From Bugula neritina (Eukaryota > Animalia > Bryozoa): DNA of 64,000 bases. A program made the position numbers and the translations under genes. The notes beneath the pieces are model-generated. The model did no database searches and had not been told where the DNA came from. It saw nothing but the letters and a program-made list of their open reading frames with translations. Shown piece after piece: positions 1 through 59,900 of this stretch. The stretch is from assembly GCA_964035545.1 (NCBI GenBank), contig OZ037773.1:1207751-1271750 (forward strand), given 5' to 3'. How positions within the stretch are numbered: position 1 is the stretch's first letter; each line of letters begins with the position of its first letter.

Positions 1-685
1 ACAATTTCTGCTTCAAACTTTCAATAGTGTGCTGAATAGTTGGTACAGTATTCCTATGTTGATGGGGGGACAACTCTGAAACAGGAGCTGTACACTGCAG
101 TAAATTAAGTTGCTTTTGCTGGATAAGGATATATGGTGATTATTGAGCTCTCTAGCTGCGACAATAAGTTAAACTGTCTGACATCACACAACTTAGAGAT
201 ACTTAAGCACCAGGTTCAAATTCTCACTTATTGAATATGCTTTGGTATAAATACTAACGACTGCCATTGCAAAGTTGTGTTGATGAGGGGACAAACCTTG
301 AATCAGCTGCTGCACTCAGATAGGAGAGATTGTGTGCGTACTACAACGTCACGAACACATATATAAATATTTGTATAATTCGGCAACCAGCAGGCTGACT
401 GAACTATGCTGAATATCACTGAGTCACTAAGATACAAGACCTTATGTTTGGCAGCCTTTGCATTGTTTTGCATCAGATTGAAAGATTGTAGTTGTGGTTG
501 AAAATTTGTGTGTGCCATAGATATGTGCTAATTTGGAAAATACACAAATGGGAATAAAAATAATTTATTTTCTGAAATTTCAAGAATTTTTCATAACCTA
601 AAACTGTGGCAGTGCTGGAAGCGGGCTCAATGTTAAAATAAAAAGATTATTTTGTAATGGCAATCAATTTAACATCCATACTTGC

Positions 686-910
686 AGGACTATACTGTAC
701 TATATACTAGACTATGCTATACTATGTTATACTATACTGTAATATACTATACTGTAATATACTATATACTATACTATACTATGCTATACTATACTATTCT
801 ATACAACACTAATGCACATGTATTACACCATCTGGTATACTGTAATATACTAGACTATGCTATATACTATTCTATATACTATTCTACAGAATACTTACCA
901 TGCTTACTAT
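686..910. repeat. (TATAC)n-type degenerate microsatellite
   Basis: Runs of ctata/tatac/tatgc pentamers; the Tyr-rich ORF 682-936 is an artefact of this repeat. Confidence 0.9.
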
Positions 911-1081
911 ATTTCTTACTTGTACACACTTACTAGACAGTTAATTATGTTAAAGAGGAAAGCTGAACACTCTTTTTGTTGTATTGTGTTTTGGCCTATA
1001 TTTTAGGAGATAAAAGTTTCATTTCATCAAAAGTTATTTATACCTGAATGCTTTCTTTCTATTCTTTATGCTAACATGCAG

Positions 1082-1160
1082 AGAAGATTCTTCGTCAGCC
1101 ACCACTAACTATCCTCATACTTGTCCGCCTACAAATCTAAAAGGCTCATCCAATGCATAA
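1082..1160 (+). CDS. Possible terminal exon of an upstream gene (EDSSSATTNYPHTCPPTNLKGSSNA*)
   Basis: Pyrimidine tract + gcag acceptor at 1080-1081, short open frame to TAA, AATAAA at 1215-1220; no recognisable homology. Confidence 0.2.
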
Positions 1161-1364
1161 GTTCCAGTTATTATTCAGTATAACCTCTGCTGGCGTACAT
1201 ACACTGCATATAATAATAAATTATATCTTTGCTGCTGGTACAGCTCTGTCACACAGCTCATGCTATACGGAGTATTGTTTATTGAAGAAATGTAAAGTAA
1301 GGGTAAGAGTACTTTTATTATGCTTTTAAGTTTGTTTTTATTTCAAGGTCAGGTTCTGCTTGTA

Positions 1365-1820
1365 ACCTATGTATGTACTATACTTATACTTACTCTACCA
1401 TACTATACTGTGCTATACTGTGCTATACTGTGCTTGTAACCTATATGTATGTACTGTAATAGTGACTCAGCATACTATACTTATACTTATACTCTACCAT
1501 GCTATACTGTGCTATACTGTGCTATACTACACTATACTATACTACACTATACTACGCTATACTACGCTATACTACGCTATACTACGCTATACTACGCTAT
1601 ACTACGCTATACTACGCTACGCTACGCTACGCTACGCTACGCTACGCTACGCTACGCTATGCTATGCTATGCTATGCTATACTATGCTATACTATGCTAT
1701 ACTATGCTATACTATATTATATACTATACTATAGACTATGCTATACTATACTATAGACTATGCTATACTGTGCTATACTATACTATAGACTATGCTATGC
1801 TATACTCTGTTATACTATAT
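1365..1820. repeat. (TATAC/CTACG/CTATG)n pentamer microsatellite
   Basis: Tandem actacgctat, gctac, gctat units; explains ORFs 1369-1853. Resumes after 3041, i.e. interrupted by the MITE. Confidence 0.95.
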
Positions 1821-1821
1821 A

Positions 1822-3039
1822 GGGGTAATGGGGCACAACGGGCCAATTTTTGAGTTTTTTGCTTTCCATCGGCTGTTTTTCAAGTTACTAGTTCAATAAT
1901 ATCTAGTCTAAATGCTGCATCTGTTGTCTATTACAAGTATCAGTTTGTTGTTTCTATCTCTCTCACAACTTTCAGAATAATGAACTTTTCATGACAAAAA
2001 AATAGGCCCATTGTGGCCCCTGTACCGGGGTACAATGGGCCACTGGATGGGACACAACAAATAATTATATTAAAATTTTGTTGATTTGGTTGCATCTGAT
2101 CCTAATTTAATTAATATACACAGATAAATAAAAATATTCTTTCAGATCTACAGCAAAAATCATATTTTAGCTATACAGTTGGTACCACCACAGATAACAA
2201 GGGGAGGCACAATCAAACGCACATCACCCATTTCTGCGGTACCATTTTCATTACTGTTTAGAACTACAAATATTTTTTTCAATTTCCACTTCACAGGAAC
2301 TTTCATCAGAAAAAATTTTTAGTAACATGTACTACAAAATTCCGAGTGGCTGCACGGCTGAGGTTTGTGACTGGAGTGCGGAAGGGGGGGGGGGGGAGGG
2401 AGGAAATGTGCAAATCAGAATTTATTTTAATCATATACATGTATAATTCCTCAACAATATAATGTATAATGAATATCATGACTACCCATTAGTAGCAACA
2501 GCAGTATTTTGTATAATGTATAAAATGACAAAGCCATAACCTCACCAGATGTATATATTAAGGGAGTTTCACCTTGTAACTTGGTAGTCTTACCATTATG
2601 TCTTTGATATTTTACAAAAAGGTCAGAAATGGTTATATCTACAGATTTTAGCAATATTTCAGCCAGCTTTTTTTGGCAAACAAACTAATGACAGTGATCA
2701 GGGTGCAAGGATCAGGTGGTCCATTGTGCCCCGGGTGGCCAAGTTGAAAATATAAATGTGGCTTATGGAAAATTTATTTTAGAGTTTGCTGTTATACTAG
2801 TTAAGCAATGTAGAGACAAGCAATGGCAACAATATCAGTAAAATCTTGGCTTGTCACCTTTGAGTATAAAAAGTTATAAAGCTTTACCTAAACCTAAAAA
2901 CATTACAACAAGTAGGTAACAACAGTTTTTGACTCGCCTCTTCAACATGTATGCTCCGCAAGTGTTGAAACTTACCTTTTTATTAAAGTACCCCTATGAC
3001 CGTTGTGCCCCCACCCTCCCCTCCTCCCCCAGTTACCCC
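1822..3039. mobile_element. Non-autonomous TIR element (Tc1/mariner-pogo-type MITE), TA target duplication
   Basis: TA|GGGGTAA...TTACCCC|TA termini; repeated subterminal motif GGGGCACAA(C/T)GG / CC(A/G)TTGTGCCCC at ~1830, 2006-2040, 2721, 3001; no transposase ORF. Confidence 0.75.
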
Positions 3040-3434
3040 TACTATTGACTATACTATACTATGCTCTACTATGCTATATACTTCTTTATAAATTGCTGTT
3101 ATATAATGTATGATGTAGTACTTGTGTGCATGTGCTAGTTTTACTAGTAAAAGTAATAAACTGGTGAATAAAGTTTGTTTCAAACTAGGCTATTATAAAC
3201 CTATGGTGTATGTTCAATATTAATTTATTTCGTGATGTAATAAATTGATCTCAAATGTTTAGTGGCTTGGGCTTATTGCAAATGCTTTTGTTATTGGTTA
3301 CAAAAGAAAAGTTATTAAGTTTGCAATCATCAATTAGTAAGAAGCTTTGCCAAAGCAATTCTAGATAAAGGATAAAGACTGATTGCAGTTGTAACTGTGG
3401 GCTTCACTGATAACTGAAACTTTCAATTTCCACT

Positions 3435-6400
3435 ATGAACATGTTTTCTTACTGTGTACCAAGAAAGATTCGAGCTGCTGTTCTAAGAGACAGCTATCCT
3501 ATGAAGTTCGTCAAAGTGATTGCTACCCTCCTACTCTTGTTCATGGGACTTTTAATCTCTAGAGAATACATCGAAGAGAACTTCTTTTCTAACAGGTTTG
3601 CAATCATAAATTGTCAATTTTATTTTGATGAAAGGAATATTGCCATTGTGTGGGCCGCGCTGTTTTGTATCTCAACTGAAGGTTTGCGATTACCAACTTT
3701 ATATCAAAGACAACAAAAATTTCCAGCTAGTTTTAAGTACAAGAATGGGGTTAACTGTAGCTGGGTTATAAAGCTGCATATTCTAGGTTACACAGTGAAA
3801 CCTTACGTGGGTTTATAGTTGCCATCTCTGTAAGAACCCCTGATGGAAAGGGTTTTTGAAGTGTTCGCCATTGTAGCACAGGAGTAATTATGGCTGGATA
3901 CTCTTCCTAACATTACCAATGGCCTTTACTGGGATTAGAATAACTGACATTGTGTTTAATAGCGATCAGTGCTCTAACATCCAAGCCATGGCTGCCCCCT
4001 TGGTTACACAGTAAAGTGTCTATATATTTTACTATTGCAATTTAACCCTCTTGCTTTGTAAAGAATATTTCTGATATTTTGTGGTCTATGTCCTGATAAT
4101 ATTCTTTTTGAAACATTTCATAATCAACATGTGTACTTCTGCTTTTCCATTTCCACCAATGAGCTCTATTTTATGATAAGCTAATAGCTGCACAGTAGTT
4201 TTTTTAGGTAACAAAAAACCAACTACTAAAATTAGAAATCAAACTATTTACAGTGTTATTTGTACAGAATAGCATGAAATCACAATAATGTTGCAAGTCT
4301 CTCTGAATTTAAAAAACTGCGAACGATTATCAGAATTATTTTTTTTAATTTTTCTTTTTAAATATAAAGTGATGTGTTCTTTAATAAATTAAGACAAATT
4401 ATTACTCCTTATGATTAAAATATCTACAGATCTATAATTTAAGCATATATAACCTGATGAAGTATGCATGGGGTTTGGCAAGCATAAAGCGGTTGATATT
4501 ACTCATGACACATTTTTTACCATTTTCAACTATTATATCTCAAACTTGAACTAAAATGAGACCTGGTTAATGATGATTTGATGATTAAGAATGTTTTTTC
4601 TTCTTTTTAGATGTACTACTGCTTATTAGCCTATATCAAGAAATGTTTATATTCATGACTTTAAACTATCATAATTCAAGCCTTTTCACCTAATTAACAA
4701 TATAATTTTCGAACATGTCTCTATTCTGTAATCTATTATATGTGATATAGCACGATATATGATATAATATGATATAGTCATACATGCATTTAACTTGCAC
4801 TCTGATTACATTCTAATCTGACGTGCAACTGTATAGTCAGTAATAGTCCAGAAACAGCTGTTTATACAAGCTGGCCATGGTCTTTCATAATACTACATCA
4901 TATGAATAATACCAGCTCCATATATATGATTCAGGTAAATTGTAAAATACAATATAATTTTCTGGATTATTCTATCAAGTTAGTATGAAGTCATAATATA
5001 ATAGAGGACTGTAATTGGAAAACTTCAAACTAAACTGAATAGTGTAAACAATAAAGCATTTGGTTGCATACTAACTTGATACGATACTCTATATAATTAT
5101 CTACTACAACAAAACACATCTAGTTAACAAACGTCTGATAGAAGCACCAGATAAAACAATATAATTAACATTTCTTCTGCCAATCGAACGCTTATATTTA
5201 AAAGGCTGGAAATCACAGAACAATTATACCTGGGTTCTTAGTCAACTGGTATGAGAATCTCAGTTGAATTTTAGGAAATAGAATGCTAGTTATAATATTT
5301 TACTATCACGTGTAAGGTTTACACTAACTTTTAGACTAAGTGTATTTTATGGACATAAACCAACTATTCAGTATTCATAACTCACTCAAGCCTATCTTTG
5401 TTGAATATAGTATGATACGCCTATTATGATGTTATTTTGAATAAAAATTTGATAATTTCTAAATTATTGGTTGCAGCAGCATTCTACGTTACTGAAATGA
5501 TTGTATTTCAACAGTGTTGTCAAGACCTCATTAGATGGACAAGCTAAGCAGACAAATAATGATTTAGTAGTCACAGCTAGTTTGTTCATAGAATATGCTG
5601 TTGCTTAGGGTTTACTGACTCAGTAATTCGTTTTAGTGAATCTATTTATTTATACCACTCCTCTAAATGCATAAAACACATGTTATTTCATATATCCGTT
5701 ATTACTTATAACACATAGCTAAAAATATGCATACAGACCAGTGACAGTATCCTACCCTGTACTTAGAGACATGCATTGGAATCATCAATAGCACAAACAT
5801 TTCAATAGAGAAACATTCAAAACATGTTAGTAGCTTCAATACTTCAGTAGCTTCAATACAAATAAAAGTAAATTGAAATCACTGAAGTTGTTGTAACTTT
5901 TGCTAGCAGCTCAATGGTGACTGCCAACTGCTTTCCTGATTCACAAATGTAACATCATGGCCTGAGATGCAGTGCTATTCTGCCATCACACCCAATTATG
6001 TCGTGTAGAGATTTTTAATAGTAAAATATTCATGTTTAAATGTTCATATGGTGCATGGTTCATGGTATTCAATATTTCAATGTATTACGTTGTCAACAGT
6101 GGTAAGAAAGGAATAACAACATATGAAACCCCATTGACATTGTAGTACTACTATGAATTATGTAGTGGAGAGTGGGCATGCCTCCTGCTAATGTCTTGCC
6201 TTGCTATATTCATGGTGTAGCTATACTTTCCTTATCTCCTTCCCGTTGGGGGGGGGAACATTTGCAGAATATTTGACTTATACACTGTTTACCTACATTT
6301 TCAAATGCCATAGGACTAAACATGTTTTGGTATTTATATATTGTTTTTGAAATTTAAATTTAATTCACAACGATAGGAGAATCTTTTAAATATTTTACCT

Positions 6401-14599: not shown

Positions 14600-15648
14600 G
14601 GCGGGCAAGTTGGGTCAAAAACTGATCTTTTTAATGTTGTGGCAGATCTAAGCGTATAAATAACAAACTTTTTGTGCCCTTAGCACCCTATAAATTTGCT
14701 CAGACTCCACTGCAGATTTGTTTAGCTGTGATGGCTTAGGGAATGTGTCCTGTGGATTCTTTTTGTAAAAGTCCAATCTCCGATTTTTTTTATCCTTGCC
14801 AACCACCGTTCCGAGAAAACCTATGGTTGAACGTTTTCCTTCGTATTTTACCACCACAAACGCCCCTTCTACATCTGAGACATCCTGTTCTTTTGCCTCC
14901 GCCTCGGATGGCGAATCGCTGTCTGTCTCTAGCAGAACTATATCATTCTGCTCAAGTTCACTGCAAGGTTCTGGCTCTATTCGTATAGGCCTACGCTTAG
15001 GTCGTTTCTTTCTTTTGTTTAACTTGTCTGCTCTGTTCTTCTTCGATTCTCTCTTTCTCTGGTGTGTCTGTCAGTATAGCAGTTTTTATCCGCTTTCTTC
15101 TGTGTGCCTCATTTTTTCTCAGAGCAGCTTTAGGCAGAAGAAGAATCTCCTGAAGGGTAACAGGCTGCTTAATGGTAGCCACCACCAGTGAAGTAGAAGT
15201 ATTCTGAGAGGTACCCCTGCCAATAAACCAAAAGTACCAGGCGTGCTTGGGTTGTGGATTGGAGTCTGGGACAAAGTTCGCTAAGATGAACTTGGCTGGG
15301 TTGAATCAGATCATCTTGCTCATTGACCACTGTTTGAGGTCTGTCCGTAATATCGGCTGGAATGTAGTCAGCGTTGGTAAATATGCCAGATGAGCGAAAG
15401 CCCAGTGTTATATTGACAAAAGTCTTGCTTTGCCCAAATGCTCGCTCTGTTAGGGTGCCAGTGTCTTGTATTTTTATGCTCCTGTTTAAATAGGTTCTCA
15501 TTAAGTTATCCATTGCCCTGTTGAAGTATGTTTCCATTGGACTGAAAACAGTTTTATCCAAAGGCTGTAATCGGTGTGAAGTATGTGGCGGCAAGGCGAG
15601 CAGAACAACTTCTAATTCTTTAGCAAGAGTTACAGACTCTAGGGATAG
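14600..15648 (-). mobile_element. pogo/Tigger-like DDE transposase remnant (3' half, frameshifted)
   Basis: LSLESVTLAKELEVVLLALPPHTSHRLQPLDKTVFSPM (DDE_1 PPHxSHxLQPLD motif), GFRSSGIF, downstream KTAILTDTPEKERIE; fragments spread over ORFs 15169-15594, 14997-15185, 14648-14857. Confidence 0.85.
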
Positions 15649-15649
15649 A

Positions 15650-16105
15650 TTTTGTTTTTGTATTGTTTTTATTTATTTAACACTTATGAAAAATTTACAA
15701 GAATGAGAAAAAAATAGCAAAAAAATGTGTTTAGGCCTATGGCACAATAACACTGCAGCTAGTCGAGGCACCAGGCTTTTGCTGAGGAGAACTAACAGTT
15801 AGCTGTCTAAAAATACAAAATCAAACAAGTTACATTGAGTCAAGCAAATAAGACTTTACAGCACGCTTGAAATCACCATCTCTTGCAACAGCACAAATTG
15901 ACTTCGGCAGCCCATTCCACAAGAATGCACACTGGTAACTCACTCTACGATGTCCGAAAGCGGTTGTAGATTTGGGCAGTTTTAAATTATATTTGGCAGC
16001 TCCAGTTAAGTAATTGTGGCAAGAATATGAATCATTGGAGTAAAAGGTTTGATGAGCAAGTAATAATAATTTATATTTGTATTGTAATTAGACAGGAAGT
16101 ATTAA
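15650..16105 (-). mobile_element. LINE (CR1/L2 group) 3' end: ORF2 C-terminus, 3' UTR and A-rich tail
   Basis: Minus-strand translation from the TTAA at 16102-16105: LILPV*LQYKYKLLLLAH...HNYLTGAAKYNLKLPKSTTAFGHRRVSYQCAFLWNGLPKSI...FKRAVKSYLLDSM* (stop ~15830); tail AAATAAATAAAAACAATACAAAAACAAAAT ending ~15650; continues in frame from ...KPLFLHS at 21430. Confidence 0.85.
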
Positions 16106-19100
16106 ACATCGTAGGCATCCAGGTTATTTTGATAAAATCAATTACTGTTAATTGAAAGATCATACTTTTTTAGTTACATTCACAAAATATATAAAAAAAA
16201 TCTCAATTCAATATACCAGAAAAAATGAATTAAAATATATGTGTTAATAGCACTGATATTGACGTGACCGTGGCACATGAAAAATCTGAAAGAAGAGTTG
16301 TCTTCTTTTTTTCTATATTAATATATAGAGCTTGTCGTGAAAATAAAGATTTTAAAAAAAAAATATTGTGACCCTCTGGTAACTTCCAGAATTTAGAAAA
16401 TTGGCTCATATATTTCCTTTTATGTGGACAACAGCTCACTTTTTTTTAAATTTATTTTGAAGCTCTTTTCGTAAAAAATATTTAAAAGTAAAAAATCCAA
16501 AATTTTTACAAATTGGTTCGGGGCTTGATGTGAAAGGCATTTAGACGAAGATGTCAAGGTCACCATTAATAAATTTATTTTATCACAATACTGCACGGAA
16601 AGTTAATGAAGTGAGCTGAAAATTAGGTTGCTAGCATATCGATATACATTATATTGATTGTTGCAGTATTATTTTTTAAATTTGTTTTATCAGTTATGTT
16701 TAACTTCTTCATAGAGCTGCTGTTAGACTAAGAGTAAGACATAATATTAGCAACAATGATAATAATATTAAATTCACGAAGAAGTATCAGTATCACTATC
16801 ACTATGAGTATGACTATGACTATCACTATGAGTGTCGTAATCGTATAAATTAATTATGAGTATGAGTATCACTATGACATTAACTCAATCAGTGATTGAC
16901 TAATACTGTGAATATGACTATGCATAACTCAATGAGAATATCAATATGAATATGGCTTCTAATTCTTGTAACTTTTGACTATGACGATGCTGATAGTGAT
17001 AATCACTGCCAGCCCAAGTCTCATACTCATAGTGATACTATTACTATTGTTTATTAGTATTAATAATTAGTATTACTATTAGTACAACTACTAGTATTAC
17101 TCATACTTCTGTTAATGATGCAGATGATAGTTTTAGAAGTTCTACTTCTACTTTTATAGTACGCTAGATTCAGATTGTATATGTTGAACTCTACTCATTT
17201 TTTACTACTAATGCTAATACTAATAGTAATAGTAATAATGATTATAGTTGTTATAATGATAGTAATACTAATGGTAATAATAACTATTTAAATTTGATAA
17301 TTTATGTTTTACAACAGCATTATCACTTATCAATTACATTGGTTCATAATATGCTTATTTTAATTTTGCTTTGTGTGTTTTGTCATGTTATAAAATTAAG
17401 TTCGTATGGTTATTTAATGAACTAGAGAACTAGCCAAATGTTATGTAACAGTTGCAATAATTTACTATAAACTCAGTGAAATTTAAAACCTAATTGATAT
17501 TACTATGACATTGATTGTACAGAGGTAGCTAAAATATACATTAAATTACCAATAATTTTAACTCGCCAATACACTATGAGTAGAACAATCAAATGCAATA
17601 ATAGAAAATTAATTAGTCATAGCAGCCCGTTGCTTGAAGAACATCGAGCTACAGGTCTAAAATTATGTAGTTTTGTGATCCCTTACATAACAAAATAATT
17701 TTTTTCAAACTGGTTTAATACTTTTATTATGAACACGCTTATCAAAGTAACATGTTTGTAATGTATATTCTATTAAAAAATCAATCACATCAGGTTTTCA
17801 ATTTGTATGTTGTACAATGTTTATTATGGTGACAAGTTACTAAATCATATGGTTCAGCTTTGTAAAGTAAAGCTGATAAAATAAATACAAGTATGTGATT
17901 GTTTTACTGCTATATATTAAATTTAAATGAGTTGAATAATATCCTAGTGCAGTGAATTAGATATTTTTTAGCTTTGGTACACCTGTTTGTTATAGGCTAA
18001 CATTCTACCAATAGAAGAATGGTGCAAGTAGAAGAAATTTCAGGCGCAGAAAGCTAAGGAGCAGTCAGAATGCTGCCAGAGTTGTGAAGAGGCACTTAAA
18101 AAAGCTGAATTTCAATAATGACATGACATTCGTAACATATCACCCTGGTGTATTTGAACTGACATGGCCAGCAGAGTTCTCGAAGTCACATTCAACAGCT
18201 ATTTACATCATCATGGTTAGCTTAAATTTAATTCCTTTATTAGTCTCTAATATATAGTTTGATATCTGCTGTAAATTCGCTTAAGGAGCATACACATAAG
18301 CAAAACTGAGTTACACTATAGTATTTGTTCTTGAATATATTTACCAAGATAAGTAGATAATTTGCTAATTCATTAACAGTAAAATTATAATGATACAACA
18401 ATTTTTCTTTTAGATGATTCAATCAATAACACAAGACACTACAACATGGTTTTGCAGTTATAGAGTATTAATTTTCTGGCTCTTTCCAAATCTTCATAGA
18501 AGGCAAAGAAAACCACCGTCAGCTTGCCTTTATAACTGAGTGCAAGCTTCTTCCACCTACAGATGATGATAAACAATTTGCTGATGTGGAACTTTCTAAT
18601 TTTGTTTACAATGAAGATAGATTATAGGACATTATTCTTTATGTAAAGATTGTCAAGTTTTGTTATAATTAAGAACAGTTTTAGTTTCAATAAATCAGTT
18701 CAACATTATGGACATCATTGCACAAACATTTTAATCTTTACTACCTACAAAGGTATCTGATGGACTACTTGAAAATACAAAACTATGCTCCAGATACACA
18801 ATGAACTGACCAGCAAAGTTAAAATGAGTTGGAGATGTAGAACATAATATCTTGTTCAAGGCTTTTCCCTGCTGTTGGAACCTTCTACTTCAGAACACTG
18901 AAATGAACAAACATATGTAGATATATAAAACTTTGCAAACAATAATAATGTGAAATTAGTTGCTAAGTATGACATTGCTAATAAATACAGCGTTGTGTAA
19001 TGTTTTATTTAATTTTTTTTTGAGCCATTTGATCTATAGGCCCGCATAGTATTTACTATATTATAACTAATAAATGGCAGACACATTATGTCAGACCAGT

Positions 19101-21425
19101 CTCCATTTAAATATAATAGTGTAGGCTATCAAATTTGTAGAAGTAAAAAACCGCATTCTTATTGAGTAAAATGCTTACCTTTTTTTTCATGATGCCTCTA
19201 CTGCTAAAGAGAAGTTTTTATCAATACAGCTCCATCAATCTGTATCCCGATGAAGCTAGTAGTTTAGGAACATTTGTGGCGGGGAGTGTAGGCTGAGCTG
19301 CAGTATAGGAAGAACCCCAACATATGTAATCTATTCAGCACATTATATGTATTGTAGAAATTTATTCAAAAAAGAATTTAGAAAATGCTTTATGAAGCAT
19401 GAACAAAGTAAAAATTAATGCTGGTGAAAGTAATATTATTACACCCATTAGAGTTACTAGCAGCTATAGCATTAAAATTATGTATTTTTATAAAATGTGT
19501 CTAATTTATGCTACAAAGTTATTACTGCCAAAGGTTACAAAATTTACCAGTCGCATTCATGCAGCTGATGGAGAATAACTAACCTTCACATGCAATAAAT
19601 ACAATTAGTAGCTCAATCTAAAACTAATGTTATGAGTATAAGTTATAGTTATTCTAAGGAATAATTGCAAAAAAAGTTACTTAGAGGAATTTAACTTTTA
19701 TTATAATGTAATTATCTTCCAAGATATATTACAACATCACTACTTGGATGCATACAATGTCATATTTATATTGGCATCAACATAATTTTCAATAATTTCC
19801 AATCTATTAACTTGAGCATTATGATTGTGATTATTTTATAAATAAGGCGATGATTAGGCACTGTTGGTATTTTGGTTCAATTTATTTATAGCTGTAACAG
19901 GCAGAGTTGTAAATATAATGGATATATCAAAATTCCAATAGGTATAGTACTCTAACACAACATTGATACTAATAATTGTAGTCACTTACTCTTAGAGTTA
20001 GTGAATGATGATACAGTCATAACAATTCGAATATCAATCAGCATTAGAGATAGACTGACTGCTTTATAATATTATAGTTATTATGTCAAATTGAATTTAT
20101 TCACTATAACTAAAAAAATTATGATTATAATTATAAATTAAAATAATTTAAATATTATATAATATATTGATAATTATTGGAATCATAATTATATTTATTG
20201 TTATGATCATTATGATTATAATTATTTAATATTATCTTTATGTTTGTATTTAAAGTTGTTCCTTAAATCTAAAGTTGTTTAAGTTTTATAAATTTATTAT
20301 AATTATATTACTGTATAAGTATTGCTATTAGTATTAGTATTAGTATAATTAAATTATTATAATTTATATTTTATTATTTATATTTATTTCACTTTTTATT
20401 TTAAGACCAACAGTTCAAATTAATACTTGTGTTGTTTGCTTTATATTATAACTTACAAGTATAACTATTAACATAATAATATTAGATTTGCTATTAGTAT
20501 TACTATGAATATAAATATTTATGTTAATATAGCTATCGGTATAACTTATACTTATAGTTATAACTAATATTACAAGTATTACTATTAGTATTACTGTAAG
20601 TGTATTAGTTTCGAAGCTGATCCTGCTCCGTAACATTAACATACTGAATACTGATACTGTCATATGATTATCATTATGACTAATAATGGTATTAATAAAT
20701 ATAACCATTGAATATTATTAATAATAGTTCACCAATACTAATAGGCGATAGTCATAGACTTAGAGTGAGAGTCATAGACATAGACTAGTGATACTCATAC
20801 TCATACTGATAGTCATAGTGATACTGTGATTCAGTCATTCACTGATTCAATTACAAATTTTAAAACTTGGTTTTACGTAGACAACTACTAACCTATAGTT
20901 CATCACAAAACGGTTGAAAATCATCATTTACTGCATATTTAAGAGTAATTTCTGGTAGTGTGGTCGACATGATAATTGAAATTAAAATAGGAAAAATAAT
21001 TATTTTGTGATTTACAGCAAGTTACAAACTAGCGAAATGGAATAGTCCATTTGAAAACAGTCAAATTAGTTACCTTTCTTGCTGTTGCGTAGCTAACGTT
21101 AGTTATTAGTAGCCGCCCGAAGAGTAACATTCATGTGATTTGAGCTACGAATAACGAAATCTGTGACAAACCCGCTTCTTAATAACTTTACGCGATATAA
21201 ACTCACGCTACAATAGGGCTATTTTGCCATCCCCACGTCAGAATAGGACACGGCGGGCAAGCTCGCGGGCAAGTCTGGGCAAGTCTAAGACACCTAATAT
21301 GACCACTTTTACTTGCATTTTTGTAGTGTTTTCGTATAAGAAATTGGATAAAATGCTGATAAAACAGTTGAAAAGCATGCAAACTTTTGCTCAAATGTAA
21401 TAAATAACCTGGACGCTTACGGCCT
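16106..21425. mobile_element. Kolobok-like DNA transposon (decayed), TTAA TSD
   Basis: TTAA at 16102-16105 and 21426-21429; imperfect TIRs ACATCGTAGGCATCCAGGTTATTT vs AGGCCGTAAGCGTCCAGGTTATTT (19/24); removal rejoins LINE ORF2; contains P2X7-ballast/KolX-like relic and AT-rich ATTAGT/ACTATG intron-like arrays. No intact transposase recognised. Confidence 0.75.
17623..18627 (+). pseudogene. KolX / P2X7 C-terminal ballast-domain-like spliced pseudogene
   Basis: Exons ~17623-17654, 17996-18215, 18414-18627 give EEWCK*KKFQAQKAKEQSECCQSCEE..., VTYHPGVFEL, RVLEVTFNSY, WFCSYRVLIFWLFPNLHRRQRKPPSACLYN, PPTDDDKQFADV; matches remembered WCxCxxC...ExxCC / HPxF / YRxxxxW...RxxxPxC...FP pattern; internal stops and frameshifts. 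Confidence 0.65.
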
Positions 21426-21429
21426 TTAA

Positions 21430-24016
21430 GGAATGTAAAAATAATGGTTTAGTGTGTGTCAATGGAGATTTTTAATAAATTAATTTTACTAATCGCTTTT
21501 GTAATAAGTTAATTTGGTTAATGTAACTTTTGCTGCGCTTCCTCATGATTCAAGACAGTATTTGATTTTGGAATTTATAAAAGAGTTATATATTACGATT
21601 AACACTTTTCTTGGTAGGAAACTTGAACATTTAAATAGCATTCCTATCATTGGCCTCAGCTTTTTACACAATTTGTCTATATGCAAATTCCATGACAGAG
21701 ATTTGTCAATTTCAACATCTAAAAATTTGATTGAGTTTGTTTCTTTTAGATATGAGTCGCCAATTTTTATTGAATTTAGGTTTAGTTTGCGTTTGTTTTG
21801 AGGTGTTTGTAATTCAAGATAATTTGTCTTTTCTAAGTTTAGAGTAAGTTTATTCAAGTTGCACCAATTTTTTTTAAGTTCTAATTCATCATTTATTGTA
21901 TTAATGTGTGAATTTAAATTTTTGCTTCTAAAGAATAAGTTTGTATCATCAGCGTATAGTATTGGATTGAGTGATTTATTAACCGTTGGTAGATCATTTA
22001 TGTAAATTAAAAATAAGGTGAGACCTAAGATGGAGCCCTGAGGCACGCCACATGTTATATCGTTTACATTAGAAAAATGTGGGTTTATCATAGTAAGTTG
22101 CTTATGATTTGAAAGGTAGTTTGAAATAAGGGTAACGCTAGTGTTTGAAAAATTGAGGCTTTTTATTTTATCAATTAAAGTACGATGGTCAATTGTATCA
22201 AAAGCTTTACTAAAATCCAAAAATGTTCCCAACACAGAATCTCCATCATTCAACGCTTCCAGTACACTATCTGTAAATTGAGCCAGTGCATGTGAAGTAC
22301 TTTTGCTTTTCCTAAAGCCATATTGTTGAGGATTTAAAATATTTTCACTTTCTTAAAAGTTGGCAATTTATAATATTTTCTATAATTCTGCTAAGAGCTG
22401 GAAGAATCGAAATAGGCCTATAATTGGTACAGTCAGTTGTTATACCTTTTTTGTGTAAAGGTTTTACCTTTGCAATTTTCAGAGTATCTGGAAATACACA
22501 ACTTTGGAAACTTTCATTAATAATGTGAGTTGAAGGAATAGATAGTATATGTGCGCTTGTTACAATCAACTTTGCTGGCATTTGGTCAAGCTTTCTTTTA
22601 ATATCCATGTTTTTTAGCAAAGCCTCTACATATTGGCTGCAAACTGGTAAAAATTGAAAGCTATAATGTGGCTTTTTTGCTGTAATGTTAGAATTGGTTG
22701 CCTCAGCTTGGTAGTTAAATTTTTTTGCCAAAGACGCTCCGACTGATGTGAAATATTTGTTGAAACAATTTGCTATGTCTTGATCACTTGTGAAAACAGA
22801 ACCGTTGTAGCAAAGTTGATTTGGCCCTGATGAAACAATTTTGCGTCGTTTTCCAAGTTGCTCATTTATCACTCTCCAACATTTTGAAGCTTCTGATGTC
22901 CGAAAAATGGTCTGAAAATACTGAGTTTTAGCTTCATGGATCTGTTTAGATACCTGGTTTCTTGGTGTTTTAAATTTATGTTTTAATTTAGTGTTGAAGG
23001 GAGAGTGTAAGGATTTTCTATAAACATAATCTCTTTTATTAATTAATTTTATAATTTCAAATGTCATCCAAGGATTTTTCGGCATTTTAATCTTATTCTC
23101 TCGTGTTTCAAGGGGATCGTGCTTGTTACAAATATTTAGAAAATTATTTGCAAAACTATTGTATTTACTGTAAACTTCGGGCTTACAATAAACTTTATTT
23201 TTCCAATTTATGTCACTCAGTTCTTTTAAAAAAGTTTTTGTATCAAAGGTTCTATAGTTTCGACTTGTGATGTTTTCGGTAGGTTTAAAATGACTACTAT
23301 CATTTTCAAAGCTAATAAATGTTGGTAGGTGGTCTGCAACCTTAGTCATTATTGTTCCTGAGGTAACTATTTTGTTGTTAAAGTTTATATTGATATGGTC
23401 TATACAGGATTTAAATCTAGTCGGTATAGTGATAACATTTGAGAAATTTGCGCTAGCAAGAATATTAAGATATTCTTGGCTTACCCTATCCGATTTCAGT
23501 GTATCAATATTTATGTCACCCAATATAATGTGACTGTGTCCCTTAGTAAGAATGTACCGCCGAGATCGCAGAGAAAGGCGCCAGTGTCTGAGGAAGGCTG
23601 CCGGTAGACAACAGTAAGGTAGTCCAAACATGCTTAAGACTCCACCTCCCAATTCCAATAGCAAGGATTCTGTGCCAGCTATCGTGATATCATTACATTT
23701 AAATGCCTCCTGCAGCACCATTGCTCACATAGACCCCAACTTCCCCCTCCCTCTAGTTAAACGTTGTTTGTGTACAAAAATCATAACCATTTAAAGGATA
23801 GTTACTAGTCTCGTCATCATACAAACAAGTTTCAGTAATACATATAAGGTCAAAAGGTTTATTAACACTACTCACAAAAACTTCAAGGGACTCAAAATCT
23901 GGGCGCAAGCTTTGAATATTTATATTTAGAAATATTGTAGAACAAGAAAAATCAGTAACTGTACATTTATTTTGAAAATTTTTAGCGGAAAATTCTTTAC
24001 ATATAATCATAGGCAT
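21430..24016 (-). pseudogene. LINE ORF2 (APE + RT), disrupted
   Basis: ORFs 23753-24016, 22345-23721, 21543-22253 are consecutive pieces of one APE-RT polyprotein; YADD at ~21945-21957. Confidence 0.88.
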
Positions 24017-24067
24017 GAATTTCTGTGTAGTTGATTAAAAAAAGAGTCAAAAACAAGTAACAGAAAG

Positions 24068-24774
24068 TTAACCCAACATTGCTAAATCATTTATAGTTCT
24101 AGTTGGTATAACCTCACTGTCTGGTGTCTTTCTTAAAAAGGTTCTGTTGTTATTGGTCGATGCAAAATTGTAACCATATTCCTTCTTATATGTTGGAACT
24201 TGATGAAAAAGAGCGGTTTGTTTAGGTGTTAGCATTTCATTTGCAAAAATTCTGCTATTGTTTGACTTGAAACCTAAATCACTAGCAACAACTTTTTGCT
24301 CTCTTGCAACTAGATAGGAATTTATCACACTTATGTATTTGTAAAAATTGCCTTACAATCTTGTCTGACTTTTTTTATCCTGTAAAGATTGTTTATGTCG
24401 GTGTTTGGGTTGATTTCATAGCTCACTTTATCTGAAAACACTTTAATTGCTTGAAAAAGATCTTTGCCTGCTTTGTAAGGAATTCCATCTATAACCAGGT
24501 TCCTCCTATTTCTATGGTGGGTTAGCTGATCTAACTGCTCTTCTAAGTCTACAATCTTTTTAGCATTTACACCTTTTAGGTTAACCTTGAATTCTTGCAT
24601 TTCATCTGACATGAAGTTTAAACCTTTTGTTATCTCCATTTGCTCGTATTCTAACTTTTTAAGTCTGGAATCAAAGTTATCTAATTTTGCTAATATTAAA
24701 ACCAATTTTTCATGAATTGAATCAGGTGTTTTTGAAGGTGTTGAAATTGATGTTTTACTTCCTCTACTAGGCAT
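24068..24774 (-). pseudogene. LINE ORF1 (frameshifted)
   Basis: Two adjacent ORFs with coiled coil and NLVIDGIP / IFANEMLTP motifs typical of CR1/L2-group ORF1. Confidence 0.75.
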
Positions 24775-56900: not shown

Positions 56901-59900
56901 CCCAACACGACTGTATATGTCAAGCAGCGCTTCAGCTACAGTAGCTGAGTCAATGTTCTTCAATGGTGTAGCTTCAGGGTATCTTGTAGCATAGTCAACT
57001 AAAGTTAGGATGTAACGGTGTCCTTTCTCACTTGGAGGGTTAATTGGTCCGATTAGGTCTATTGCACATCTCTTGAATGGGGTGTCAATTAGTGGAGTTT
57101 CCTGTACTGGAACTTTCATGACTGAGCCTTTTTTCACCGTCTTCTGGCAAATGTCACATGATTGACAGAAACGTACGACATCTCCGTTTAGTCCTGGCCA
57201 GAAGAAGTTGGAAAGCACTCTATCAGTGGTTTTCTTTACTCCTAGGTGTCCGCTCATTATGCAGTCATGAGCTTTTTGTAGAACTTCCTTCCTCAGTGAA
57301 CTGGGTACCATGAGTTGTTTAACAGGTTTTACACTGGCAGACTTCGAGTCGGTGTACTCACGGTACAGAATCTTATTCCTCACCACAAACCTAGTGGTGC
57401 ATCCCTTTTTCTCCTTCACTTCTTTTGCATCGAAGAAACGCTCCAATGTGGGGTCATCCCTCTGCAGTCTGGCTATTTCATCTTTCCCTATACTTAATGG
57501 GTTAGTATTTGAATCAATCTTCAGTGGTTTGTCTCCTGACTTTTCCTTGACAGCCTGAGCTCTTGTGGTTACGGCGCAGTCCTTCCAGTTTTCCAGTGGC
57601 TGGTCAGCTGATCTCGCTCCATCCACATTCCCAATAAGCAGGTCACAAATCGTCTTGTCCATTACTGCAGCTTTGACGACACCATTGTAAAATGGTGAGC
57701 GCACTGAGATAAGTGCCCACTGAGCCTCTCTAACACTTGCATCAGCCATATTCAGATAAACTGATTCTCCAGTTAAATGTTGAGGTTGCACATACTTTGC
57801 ATTGACTACAATGCAACCACAGCCGGTGTCGCGCATTACAGTAGCTCGTTGGCCATTAACTTCCGCATCAAATATCGCTGTGCCCCCATCTTTGAATTTA
57901 GGTCCATTCTTGCAGACAGCAGCGTTGACAAACTTTTTACCATTAACTGTGATTTCCGTAGGTTCTTCCACTTTAGATGAGATTCCTGGATCTGTGACCA
58001 TAGTCTTATTCTGAGTAGTCCCTATTGCAGCAGCAGCACGCACCGACCTTCCACCATACTTTCTGCAGTCTGAAGTATTGTGATTGTTCATCTTGCAATG
58101 TGAACAGTACTTCTTCCCTCGCCGTGGGCAGTTGCGAGCAATGTGTGACTTATCCTTGCAGATGAAGCATGCACCATCGCTTTTACTTCCTTGTTCAGCA
58201 TTCATGCTAGCGGCAGGTGTGTTTTCCATCCTTTTTGTATTAGTTTTCTTAGTCTTTGCTAGTTTTCTTCCACGGGCGTGCAAAAACAGTGACGCTGCAT
58301 CACACATATCCTCACTGCTGTTGTAGGAACTTTGCTTTAAATGCACGGCTAGGTCGTCTGGGCATGATGTTCAGTTGTTCAGTTCAGTTGCCACTAGTTT
58401 GGCTATGTCCATGCCCCCTGAAAGCTCCACCCACTTGTGCACATAACTTTCTATCCTAGTGAACAGTTGGGCAGGAGTTTCATCCTCGTAAGCTTCTGCC
58501 TCTCTGAGCTTTTTTCTGTAGCCCTCTTGAGTCAAGTTAAAGCGCTCCAATAGGGCTTCTTTGACTTTTTTATAATCTCTACGATCGGTAGGTGACAACC
58601 GGATGTAAGCTTCTGTTGCCGTACCCCTTAGGTACTGACTGAGATGGTAGGGCCAATCTCCCTTGTCCCAGTTACATCCTTCGGCAACCCACTCGAACCG
58701 CTCTAAATAGCTATCCATTTCATCCACCTTCTCATCAAAGAATGGTATTTTTGGTTTTGGTTTGTTAGTTATTTCTAACCTGGTGCTCTCATGTCTTGAG
58801 TGCTCCAAACTTGTGTCAGCTTTCAGCTTTTCCATATCTAATTCATGTCGTTGTCTTCTCTCTTCTGCCTCCTGGTCAGCTTGAACCTTGAGTGCCATTG
58901 CCTCCTGATCAGCTTTAACCTTGAATGCCGTTGCCTCCTGATCAGCTTTTATCTTCATCGCCATTAGGGCTTTCTCATTTTCTTGCCTGATCTTTTCTGC
59001 CTCACGCTCTAATCTACGTTCCTCTCGGTCTTTTTCTTTTTCCTCTCGGTCCTTTTCTTTTTCTTCTTGTGCAGCAACAATAGGTAGGTTCTTTTCAACA
59101 AAAGCTACGAGCTTATCCTCCACCAATCCGAGGTCTTTACCCATCTGTGTCACTCTCTCCAACAATGCCATAATGTCTCAACAACTGTTAATTAATCCTG
59201 TGTATACTCACGTTGTAACTAATAACTTCCCTGTGTGCGACTGAGACTTCCCGGAGCAGCCCCCAATTGTCACAAAACTGTTGATAGCAGTGTGACGAGT
59301 TCGAAAAGTCTGGTAGTCAGAAGTGTATAGACAAGTAGCATACAGCTTGCTAATCCAGTTGTGAGTAAATAGAGTTGTGAATATAAGTAGACTTTATTCC
59401 TTTAGTAAGATATGCACAGATGAATTAATAAAAATGAACTGATTCGTAAACACAACTGCCTCAGTATTTATAGTAAACAAAACACTCTAGAACATTCTCA
59501 AGCATTCCAGTATAGAAGATTCTAGTAGAAAACATTCTCCACATGCCAATACTATTTATAGAAAATCAAAACAAAACAAAACATTGGAATTTCCATGGTT
59601 ATTTCGCAATTATTGCGCAATACCTTGTTTACATTGCTGGGCAGTAGTTAACATGACTAACCAAAACAGTAACAATGAACAATGACCCATCTCTTTGATT
59701 AGTCTAGAATATTTATGAACATTCCTGTATAATCATTAGGAAAAACCCGGTAAGTTTATTTATAGGTATATGTACACTCAGAATTTGTGACAGAGCAATT
59801 GCGTCAATTGCGCCAAACTAGCGTTCTTTGATTGGTCTGACAGCAGAAAAGTTTGTTCGTTTTGAATCACGTGATCGACTTTTCACAGTTTCGTCGGAAC

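Follow-up and report, generated by a model that had tools for sequence, protein, structure and literature searches.

What interrupts the second open reading frame (ORF2) of a long interspersed nuclear element (LINE) in the bryozoan Bugula neritina, and is the P2X7-like sequence inside it a gene? The interruption lies in a stretch of 64,000 nucleotides (contig OZ037773.1 of assembly GCA_964035545.1, positions 1,207,751 to 1,271,750), referred to here as the window, and occupies window positions 16106-21425 (5,320 bp). An initial annotation, made from the letters of the window, took it for a Kolobok-like transposon carrying a spliced gene related to KolX and to the ballast domain of P2X7. Following up this proposal across the genome leads to an account that is probably right as a whole: a non-autonomous cut-and-paste family of about 100 copies which inserts at TTAA, probably derives from the Kol0 lineage of Kolobok and carries a KolX that is already dead.

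Is it a mobile element at all? The presence of TTAA on both sides and of 24-bp terminal inverted repeats (TIRs) matching at 19 positions, as first described, holds in the window and far beyond it. The window TIRs are imperfect (19/24, or 82% over the 28 nt that include TTAA), and testing for extension found no similarity past 24 bp. When the whole 5,320-bp element was searched by BLAST against its own 216-Mb assembly, at least 23 full-length copies were recovered with 95-99% BLAST identity, or 97.7-99.5% over aligned columns, all 23 aligning to exactly query bases 1-5320. Cut out with their flanks, they all start ACATCGTAGGCATCCAGG and finish ...CCTGGATGCTTACGGCCT, which settles the expectation that other copies sharing these ends would exist. 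TTAA stands on both sides in 21 of the 23, the remaining two having ATAA on the left and TTAA on the right, and the bases neighbouring TTAA show no further preference. The TIRs match at 20/24 positions in other copies, and the right TIR of the window copy carries one private T-to-C change relative to them. Scanning the genome for TTAA followed by the TIR, with up to two mismatches tolerated, gave 102 + 104 = 206 ends, against 0 + 0 for the reversed control, from which about 103 elements are estimated; searches with the 120-bp ends returned 106 and 107 candidates. The element is a mobile, TTAA-targeting TIR transposon. Some 600-680 bp inside each end it has sub-terminal blocks that are 88-93% reverse-complementary, which could be transposase-binding arrays or the remains of once longer inverted ends.

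What did the target look like before the insertion? Once the element and one TTAA are removed, the minus-strand LINE reading is continuous in one frame, '...KSPLTHTKPLFLHS/LILPV*LQYKYKLLLLAHQTF...LLDSM*' (join '...THTKPLFLHS/LILPV*LQYKYK...', with the slash at the junction and asterisks for stops), confirming the statement that excision restores the ORF2 frame. This host LINE copy bears stops of its own. The flanks, 15860-16105 and 21426-21670, match the same four LINE copies elsewhere in the genome with 92-95% identity, one right flank dropping to 88%. At all four of these uninterrupted copies the left and right flank alignments overlap by exactly 4 bp. Such an overlap at paralogous empty sites indicates a precise 4-bp duplication.

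How old is the family? Its copies form subfamilies, again 97.7-99.5% identical between one another. One sequence of 5,339 bp recurs unchanged in seven copies at different loci, and in another subfamily three copies agree at every base over 5,313 bp. Identical copies at different sites mean that transposition is very recent or ongoing. Two loci on contig C7 (contigs are numbered with the letter C), L016 and L017 (C7:8234285-8242623 and C7:322303-330641), lie 8 Mb apart and are 100% identical over 8,339 bp, that is, over the element and both of its 1.5-kb flanks; the pair reflects either a recent duplication or a duplicate made in assembly, and does not count as two separate insertions.

Does the element encode the protein that moves it? 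It is non-autonomous. Its longest stop-to-stop frame is 99 aa, no transposase, THAP or credible Pfam domain was found in its frames scanned at 42 aa or more, an Rfam scan of the element gave no match, and much of its interior is microsatellite-like. The element would be autonomous after all if the AT-rich 2.8 kb on the right-hand side of the KolX-like sequence concealed an unrecognised transposase split by many introns. That would suit a family of about 100 copies, some of them identical, whose TIRs turned up on no partner, but the short frames, their lack of any such domain and the repetitive interior make it very improbable.

Where does the likeness to P2X7 come from? The Kol0 lineage of Kolobok encodes a second protein, KolX, which is homologous to the P2X7 ballast (PMC9587614). 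The peptides first quoted from the element (WCK*KKF, SECC, YHPGVF, RVLEV, SYRVLIFW..LHRRQRKPPSACLY and PPTDDD) all occur in it, though in three different frames. The two exon-like blocks were searched separately, piece by piece, and in tblastn with KolX/ballast relatives, the check proposed at the outset, both match intact bryozoan proteins. For the last exon the protein P0010 gives E 3.8e-14 with 56-61% identity, in two high-scoring segment pairs that lie in two frames and with a TGA inside. For the upstream block, 18002-18214 is matched by P0018, a protein annotated in the bryozoan Watersipora subatra (XP_067931047.1), and by its isoform P0050 (E 1e-3 against the element and 4e-5 to 7e-5 against the region, four stops being aligned), and 18179-18217 shares 77% identity with residues 21-33 of P0027. 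For the relic to run collinear with the spliced protein of Watersipora, 18218-18413 has to be removed as a putative intron.

The bryozoan proteins lead on to P2X7. P0018 matches the Pfam profile P2RX7_C (PF20478) over profile positions 65-186 (37.3 bits, E 3.4e-9), and in the PDB a 22-member family profile matches P2X7 alone (6u9v residues 537-586, E 1.1e-4). The AlphaFold model of P0018 is of low confidence (mean predicted local distance difference test score, pLDDT, 63.7), and its top 13 Foldseek matches are all P2X7, weak as they are (best prob 0.92, E 0.16). Closer to the element stand the open reading frames (ORFs) of a tandem array on contig C6, which in a direct scan reach 25.3 bits (E 1.6e-5), enough to clear the gathering score of P2RX7_C, and which match the last exon of the element in tblastx (E 4.7e-10, with the same stop codon) and tblastn (2.4e-6). 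With one of these ORFs as query, HMMER was run exhaustively against 1.84 billion representative proteins and returned only 49 matches, P0010, P0018, P0050 and P0027 among them. The profile itself does not recognise the relic: PF20478 gave no match at E up to 10 on its six reading-frame pieces, and the genome-wide search with the same profile matched no copy of the element, only the array on C6. Compared with the P2X7 ballast (PF20478; 6U9V), then, the element differs in having no open frame, in having lost Cys positions and in escaping direct detection by the profile; it is through the intact bryozoan intermediates that its sequence is seen to be a genuine relative of KolX and of the P2X7 ballast domain.

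The array itself (C6:12939415-12946752, loci L035-L037) repeats a KolX/P2RX7_C-like C-terminal exon of 86-100 aa at intervals of about 1 kb, in six units or more. In three units the frame has no interruption and exceeds the Pfam gathering score; in others it is broken by a single TGA. Either a gene fragment that was amplified or a domesticated cluster could account for the array.

Is the KolX of the element still a gene? Following the homology takes read-through of a TAG at 18029-18031, exactly at the second Cys of the WCxC motif, after which the next conserved Cys is replaced by Phe; frame changes are needed on both sides of the HPGV motif; and in the last exon a TGA at 18537-18539 has to be read through and the frame changed once more near 18547-18553. 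No full-length copy, whatever its subfamily, differs in either stop or in the frameshift zone (23/23 alike), and exon lengths are equal across the 23 copies save for a 1-base difference in two. A genome-wide protein search yielded about 110 matches to the element, with at least one stop in each. Lesions common to all subfamilies imply that the gene was dead before the family amplified. An intact frame with zinc-binding cysteines, which would mark a member of P2RX7_C, is absent from the element.

Could a functional, spliced ballast-domain gene nevertheless be carried as cargo? The two-exon layout with a plausible acceptor site would fit, as would a homology which spans both halves of the domain and finishes at the homologous stop codon, and variable columns are somewhat scarcer in the relic (2.7%) than in the remainder of the element (5.0%, a figure inflated by hard-to-align repeats, so that the comparison is given little weight). 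Against these stand the in-frame TAG and TGA, further stops, at least three frame changes, replaced Cys positions, and the sharing of the lesions by every full-length copy and of a stop by every match in the genome, so that a working cargo gene is extremely improbable. On the evidence of its sequence, the KolX of the element is an inherited pseudogene without a coding role. Of the spliced, ballast-like gene first proposed, the ancestry and the intron-split homology stand, and the gene does not.

As to the variability along the element, window positions 18106-18855 hold 4-7 variable sites per 250 bp among the 23 copies, compared with about 10-13 elsewhere. The lower variability of the relic may come merely from alignability and composition.

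To which superfamily would such an element belong? Kolobok elements combine TTAA target-site duplications (TSDs) with 5'-RR...YY-3' termini, unlike piggyBac (Kojima & Bao 2022, PMC9587614), and the imperfect Kolobok TIRs of Xenopus begin with AG, with TTAA flanking them (PMC6004289). The element resembles Kol0 elements of the Kolobok-1_XT type, which encode a THAP-DDD/E transposase and KolX, in its 4-bp TTAA TSD, in its short imperfect TIRs with a purine start at the right end (the terminus ...CT-3', reverse complement AGGCCG..., fits the RR...YY rule) and in a KolX gene, here a pseudogene, that points inward from one end. It differs from them in the left AC, in the state of its KolX and in that no transposase or THAP remnant was detected in it. 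Derivatives of Kol0 such as the Xenopus T2-MITEs (miniature inverted-repeat transposable elements) offer a further parallel in their TTAA TSD and in the recent amplification of transposase-less copies, but the element, at 5.3 kb, is far above MITE size and has sub-terminal, microsatellite-like inverted blocks. Bryozoans are not among the Kol0 hosts listed in PMC9587614. At no fewer than 10 loci of the B. neritina genome an intact KolX-like last exon (an open frame of 83 aa, scoring identically at many loci) and a THAP exon point towards each other across 1.4-1.9 kb. At C6:5894097/5900004 the KolX and THAP partners stand 5.7 kb apart, and this pair may be a full-length element.

Taken together, a Kol0-derived Kolobok is the best-supported assignment, and a likely one to judge from TSD and KolX ancestry. 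What speaks against it? The left terminus, ACATCG..., constant in all copies, has a purine as its first base and not as its second. Kolobok is further marked by a DDD/E transposase with a C/DxxH signature, usually joined to a THAP domain, which sits in the element or in an autonomous partner sharing its TIRs. The autonomous partner with a DDE transposase that searches with the termini had been expected to reveal did not appear: no autonomous element with the same TIRs was found in the genome, every end pair that can be formed being a family copy of 5.0-7.0 kb, and no THAP or KolX locus is close to any of the zero-mismatch TIR matches listed (those on contigs C1 to part of C7). The Kolobok-like label is favoured by the TTAA TSD, the KolX ancestry and the AGG of the right end, and the AC of the left end and the missing partner keep it a probable one. 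Further adverse points concern piggyBac, of which the genome holds two apparently intact transposase frames of 595-600 aa (C1:22849802 and C4:13240616), and of which a few families carry a gene resembling KolX's C-terminal part, devoid of most of the cysteines (PMC9587614).

Is the element, then, a non-autonomous member of piggyBac with a KolX-like relic, moved by one of the genome's own piggyBac transposases? Its TTAA TSD is as much a piggyBac trait, and the two intact frames and the KolX-like genes just mentioned would supply the rest. The termini of piggyBac are C-rich at their 5' end; those of the element (ACATCG.../...CGGCCT) are of another type. There is also no match to a DDE_Tnp_1_7 transposase in it, none of the 14 PF13843 (piggyBac) matches in the genome falling inside the element, or near a KolX match or a listed TIR match, and its relic keeps the N-terminal Cys-rich part (WC., ECC, HPGV) that is reportedly missing from piggyBac-borne homologues. 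Membership in piggyBac is accordingly unlikely.

How might the family have arisen under a Kol0 origin? Its ancestor would have been a Kol0-lineage Kolobok element with transposase and KolX, which lost the transposase entirely and kept the two-exon KolX pseudogene, which the ancestor shared by all sampled subfamilies already carried in its dead state. A transposase acting in trans would recognise the 24-bp imperfect TIRs and excise the element, and reinsertion at TTAA would duplicate those 4 bases; the window copy would in this way have entered a LINE that had decayed before, hitting the C-terminal part of its ORF2. We infer both the Kolobok membership and the mobilisation in trans, for which a THAP-type DDD/E Kolobok transposase elsewhere in the genome is the presumed source. 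Because some 100 copies, several of them identical, come with no autonomous copy bearing the same TIRs, and because the AC terminus departs from the RR rule, one may also ask whether the family is cross-mobilised by the transposase of a differently-ended element (a Kol0 Kolobok or piggyBac), or whether the relic is kept for a role in cis in transposition. This is distinctly unlikely; if true, cross-mobilisation would show relaxed end recognition occurring naturally.

What does the family add? It is new, probably uncatalogued, and belongs to a known kind of non-autonomous element. That KolX ties Kolobok to the P2X7 ballast had already been published in 2022 (PMC9587614), and the concept is not new. 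For annotation, its value is that of a very young, roughly 100-copy, 5.3-kb repeat family inserting at TTAA in a bryozoan genome; given the identical copies at different sites it seems to be still moving and can therefore disrupt genes. The KolX signal is a fossil, to be counted neither as a ballast-domain gene nor as evidence of a new cargo-carrying element. The additions are modest: a probable Kol0-derived family in Bryozoa and the question of which transposase drives it. The coordinates of the features are collected in Table 1.

Table 1. Features of the element, its relic, its host LINE and related loci (window positions, or contig positions where a contig is named)
Feature	Position	Strand	Basis and remarks
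Left TTAA TSD	16102..16105	.	Sequence; TTAA/ATAA in 23/23 copies; 4-bp overlap at empty sites
Whole non-autonomous transposon	16106..21425	+	Full-length copies; no Pfam domain in ORFs of at least 42 aa
Left TIR, starts ACATCGTAGGCATCC...	16106..16129	+	Pairwise repeat match; identical in all copies
Left sub-terminal block, 6/12/18-bp repeats (TATCAC-type)	16783..16877	.	Tandem Repeats Finder (TRF); inverted relative to 20786-20826
KolX/P2RX7_C-like relic, upstream Cys-rich exon	18002..18217	+	tblastn P0018/P0050/P0027; TAG 18029-18031; frame changes ~18126-18165
Putative relic intron, pyrimidine tract and AG at 18412-18413	18218..18413	+	Collinearity with P0018/P0050; predicted from sequence
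KolX/P2RX7_C-like relic, last exon	18414..18627	+	tblastn P0010, tblastx C6 ORFs; homologous stop codon 18625-18627
Right sub-terminal repeat block, inverted partner of 16783-16833	20786..20826	.	TRF; repeat pairs
Right TIR, reverse complement starts AGGCCGTAAGCGTCC...	21402..21425	-	Repeat match; copies; genome pattern
Right TTAA TSD	21426..21429	.	Sequence; copies; empty sites
3' part of interrupted LINE ORF2 (~91 C-terminal codons and stop)	15830..16105	-	Translation; four paralogues 93-95%
5' part of interrupted LINE	21430..24774	-	ORF1-like 24331-24774; ORF2 with RVT_1 21543-22253, E 1.9e-19
Empty LINE site 1	C5:12201320-565 and 12201562-806		Flank matches
Empty LINE site 2	C3:22500361-606 and 22500119-364		Flank matches
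Empty LINE site 3	C4:12180888-1133 and 12181130-369		Flank matches
Empty LINE site 4	C3:31176446-689 and 31176688-907		Flank matches
KolX/THAP pairs	C9:7661036/7662632; C1:16273631/16275218; C3:2875124/2876724	KolX +, THAP -	

Several copies depart from the usual length. Two on contig C8 are 5.3 kb longer and were considered as an autonomous partner, a candidacy that was rejected, the extra DNA being a nested long terminal repeat (LTR) retrotransposon. This is GC-rich, about 5.3 kb long, with 352-bp LTRs and gag-/pol-like ORFs of 321, 786 and 268 aa, and lies at about position 765 of the element (L033:1073-6336 and L034:909-6172, at C8:2.865 Mb and C8:1.731 Mb). The 8.3-kb structure is present twice on C8 with 99.6% identity and is a segmental duplication. 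At C5:6245472-6252441 a TIR pair stands 6.97 kb apart, with an insertion of about 1.65 kb and the stop-bearing relic still there, and at C5:11536266-11541232 another pair stands 4.97 kb apart, with a deletion of about 0.35 kb.

Other mobile DNA is found in the window. An ORF fragment on the minus strand at 15169-15594 gives a weak match to DDE_1 of the pogo/Tigger type (E 5.7e-4, under the Pfam cut-off); lying just past the 3' end of the interrupted LINE, it marks the neighbourhood as a transposon pile-up. Further along, at 54687-59171 on the minus strand, there is what seems to be an intact LTR retrotransposon: a long open pol frame of 1,219 aa, with the domains RVT_1, RNase H, rve and integrase zinc-binding, and after it an ORF of 266 aa.

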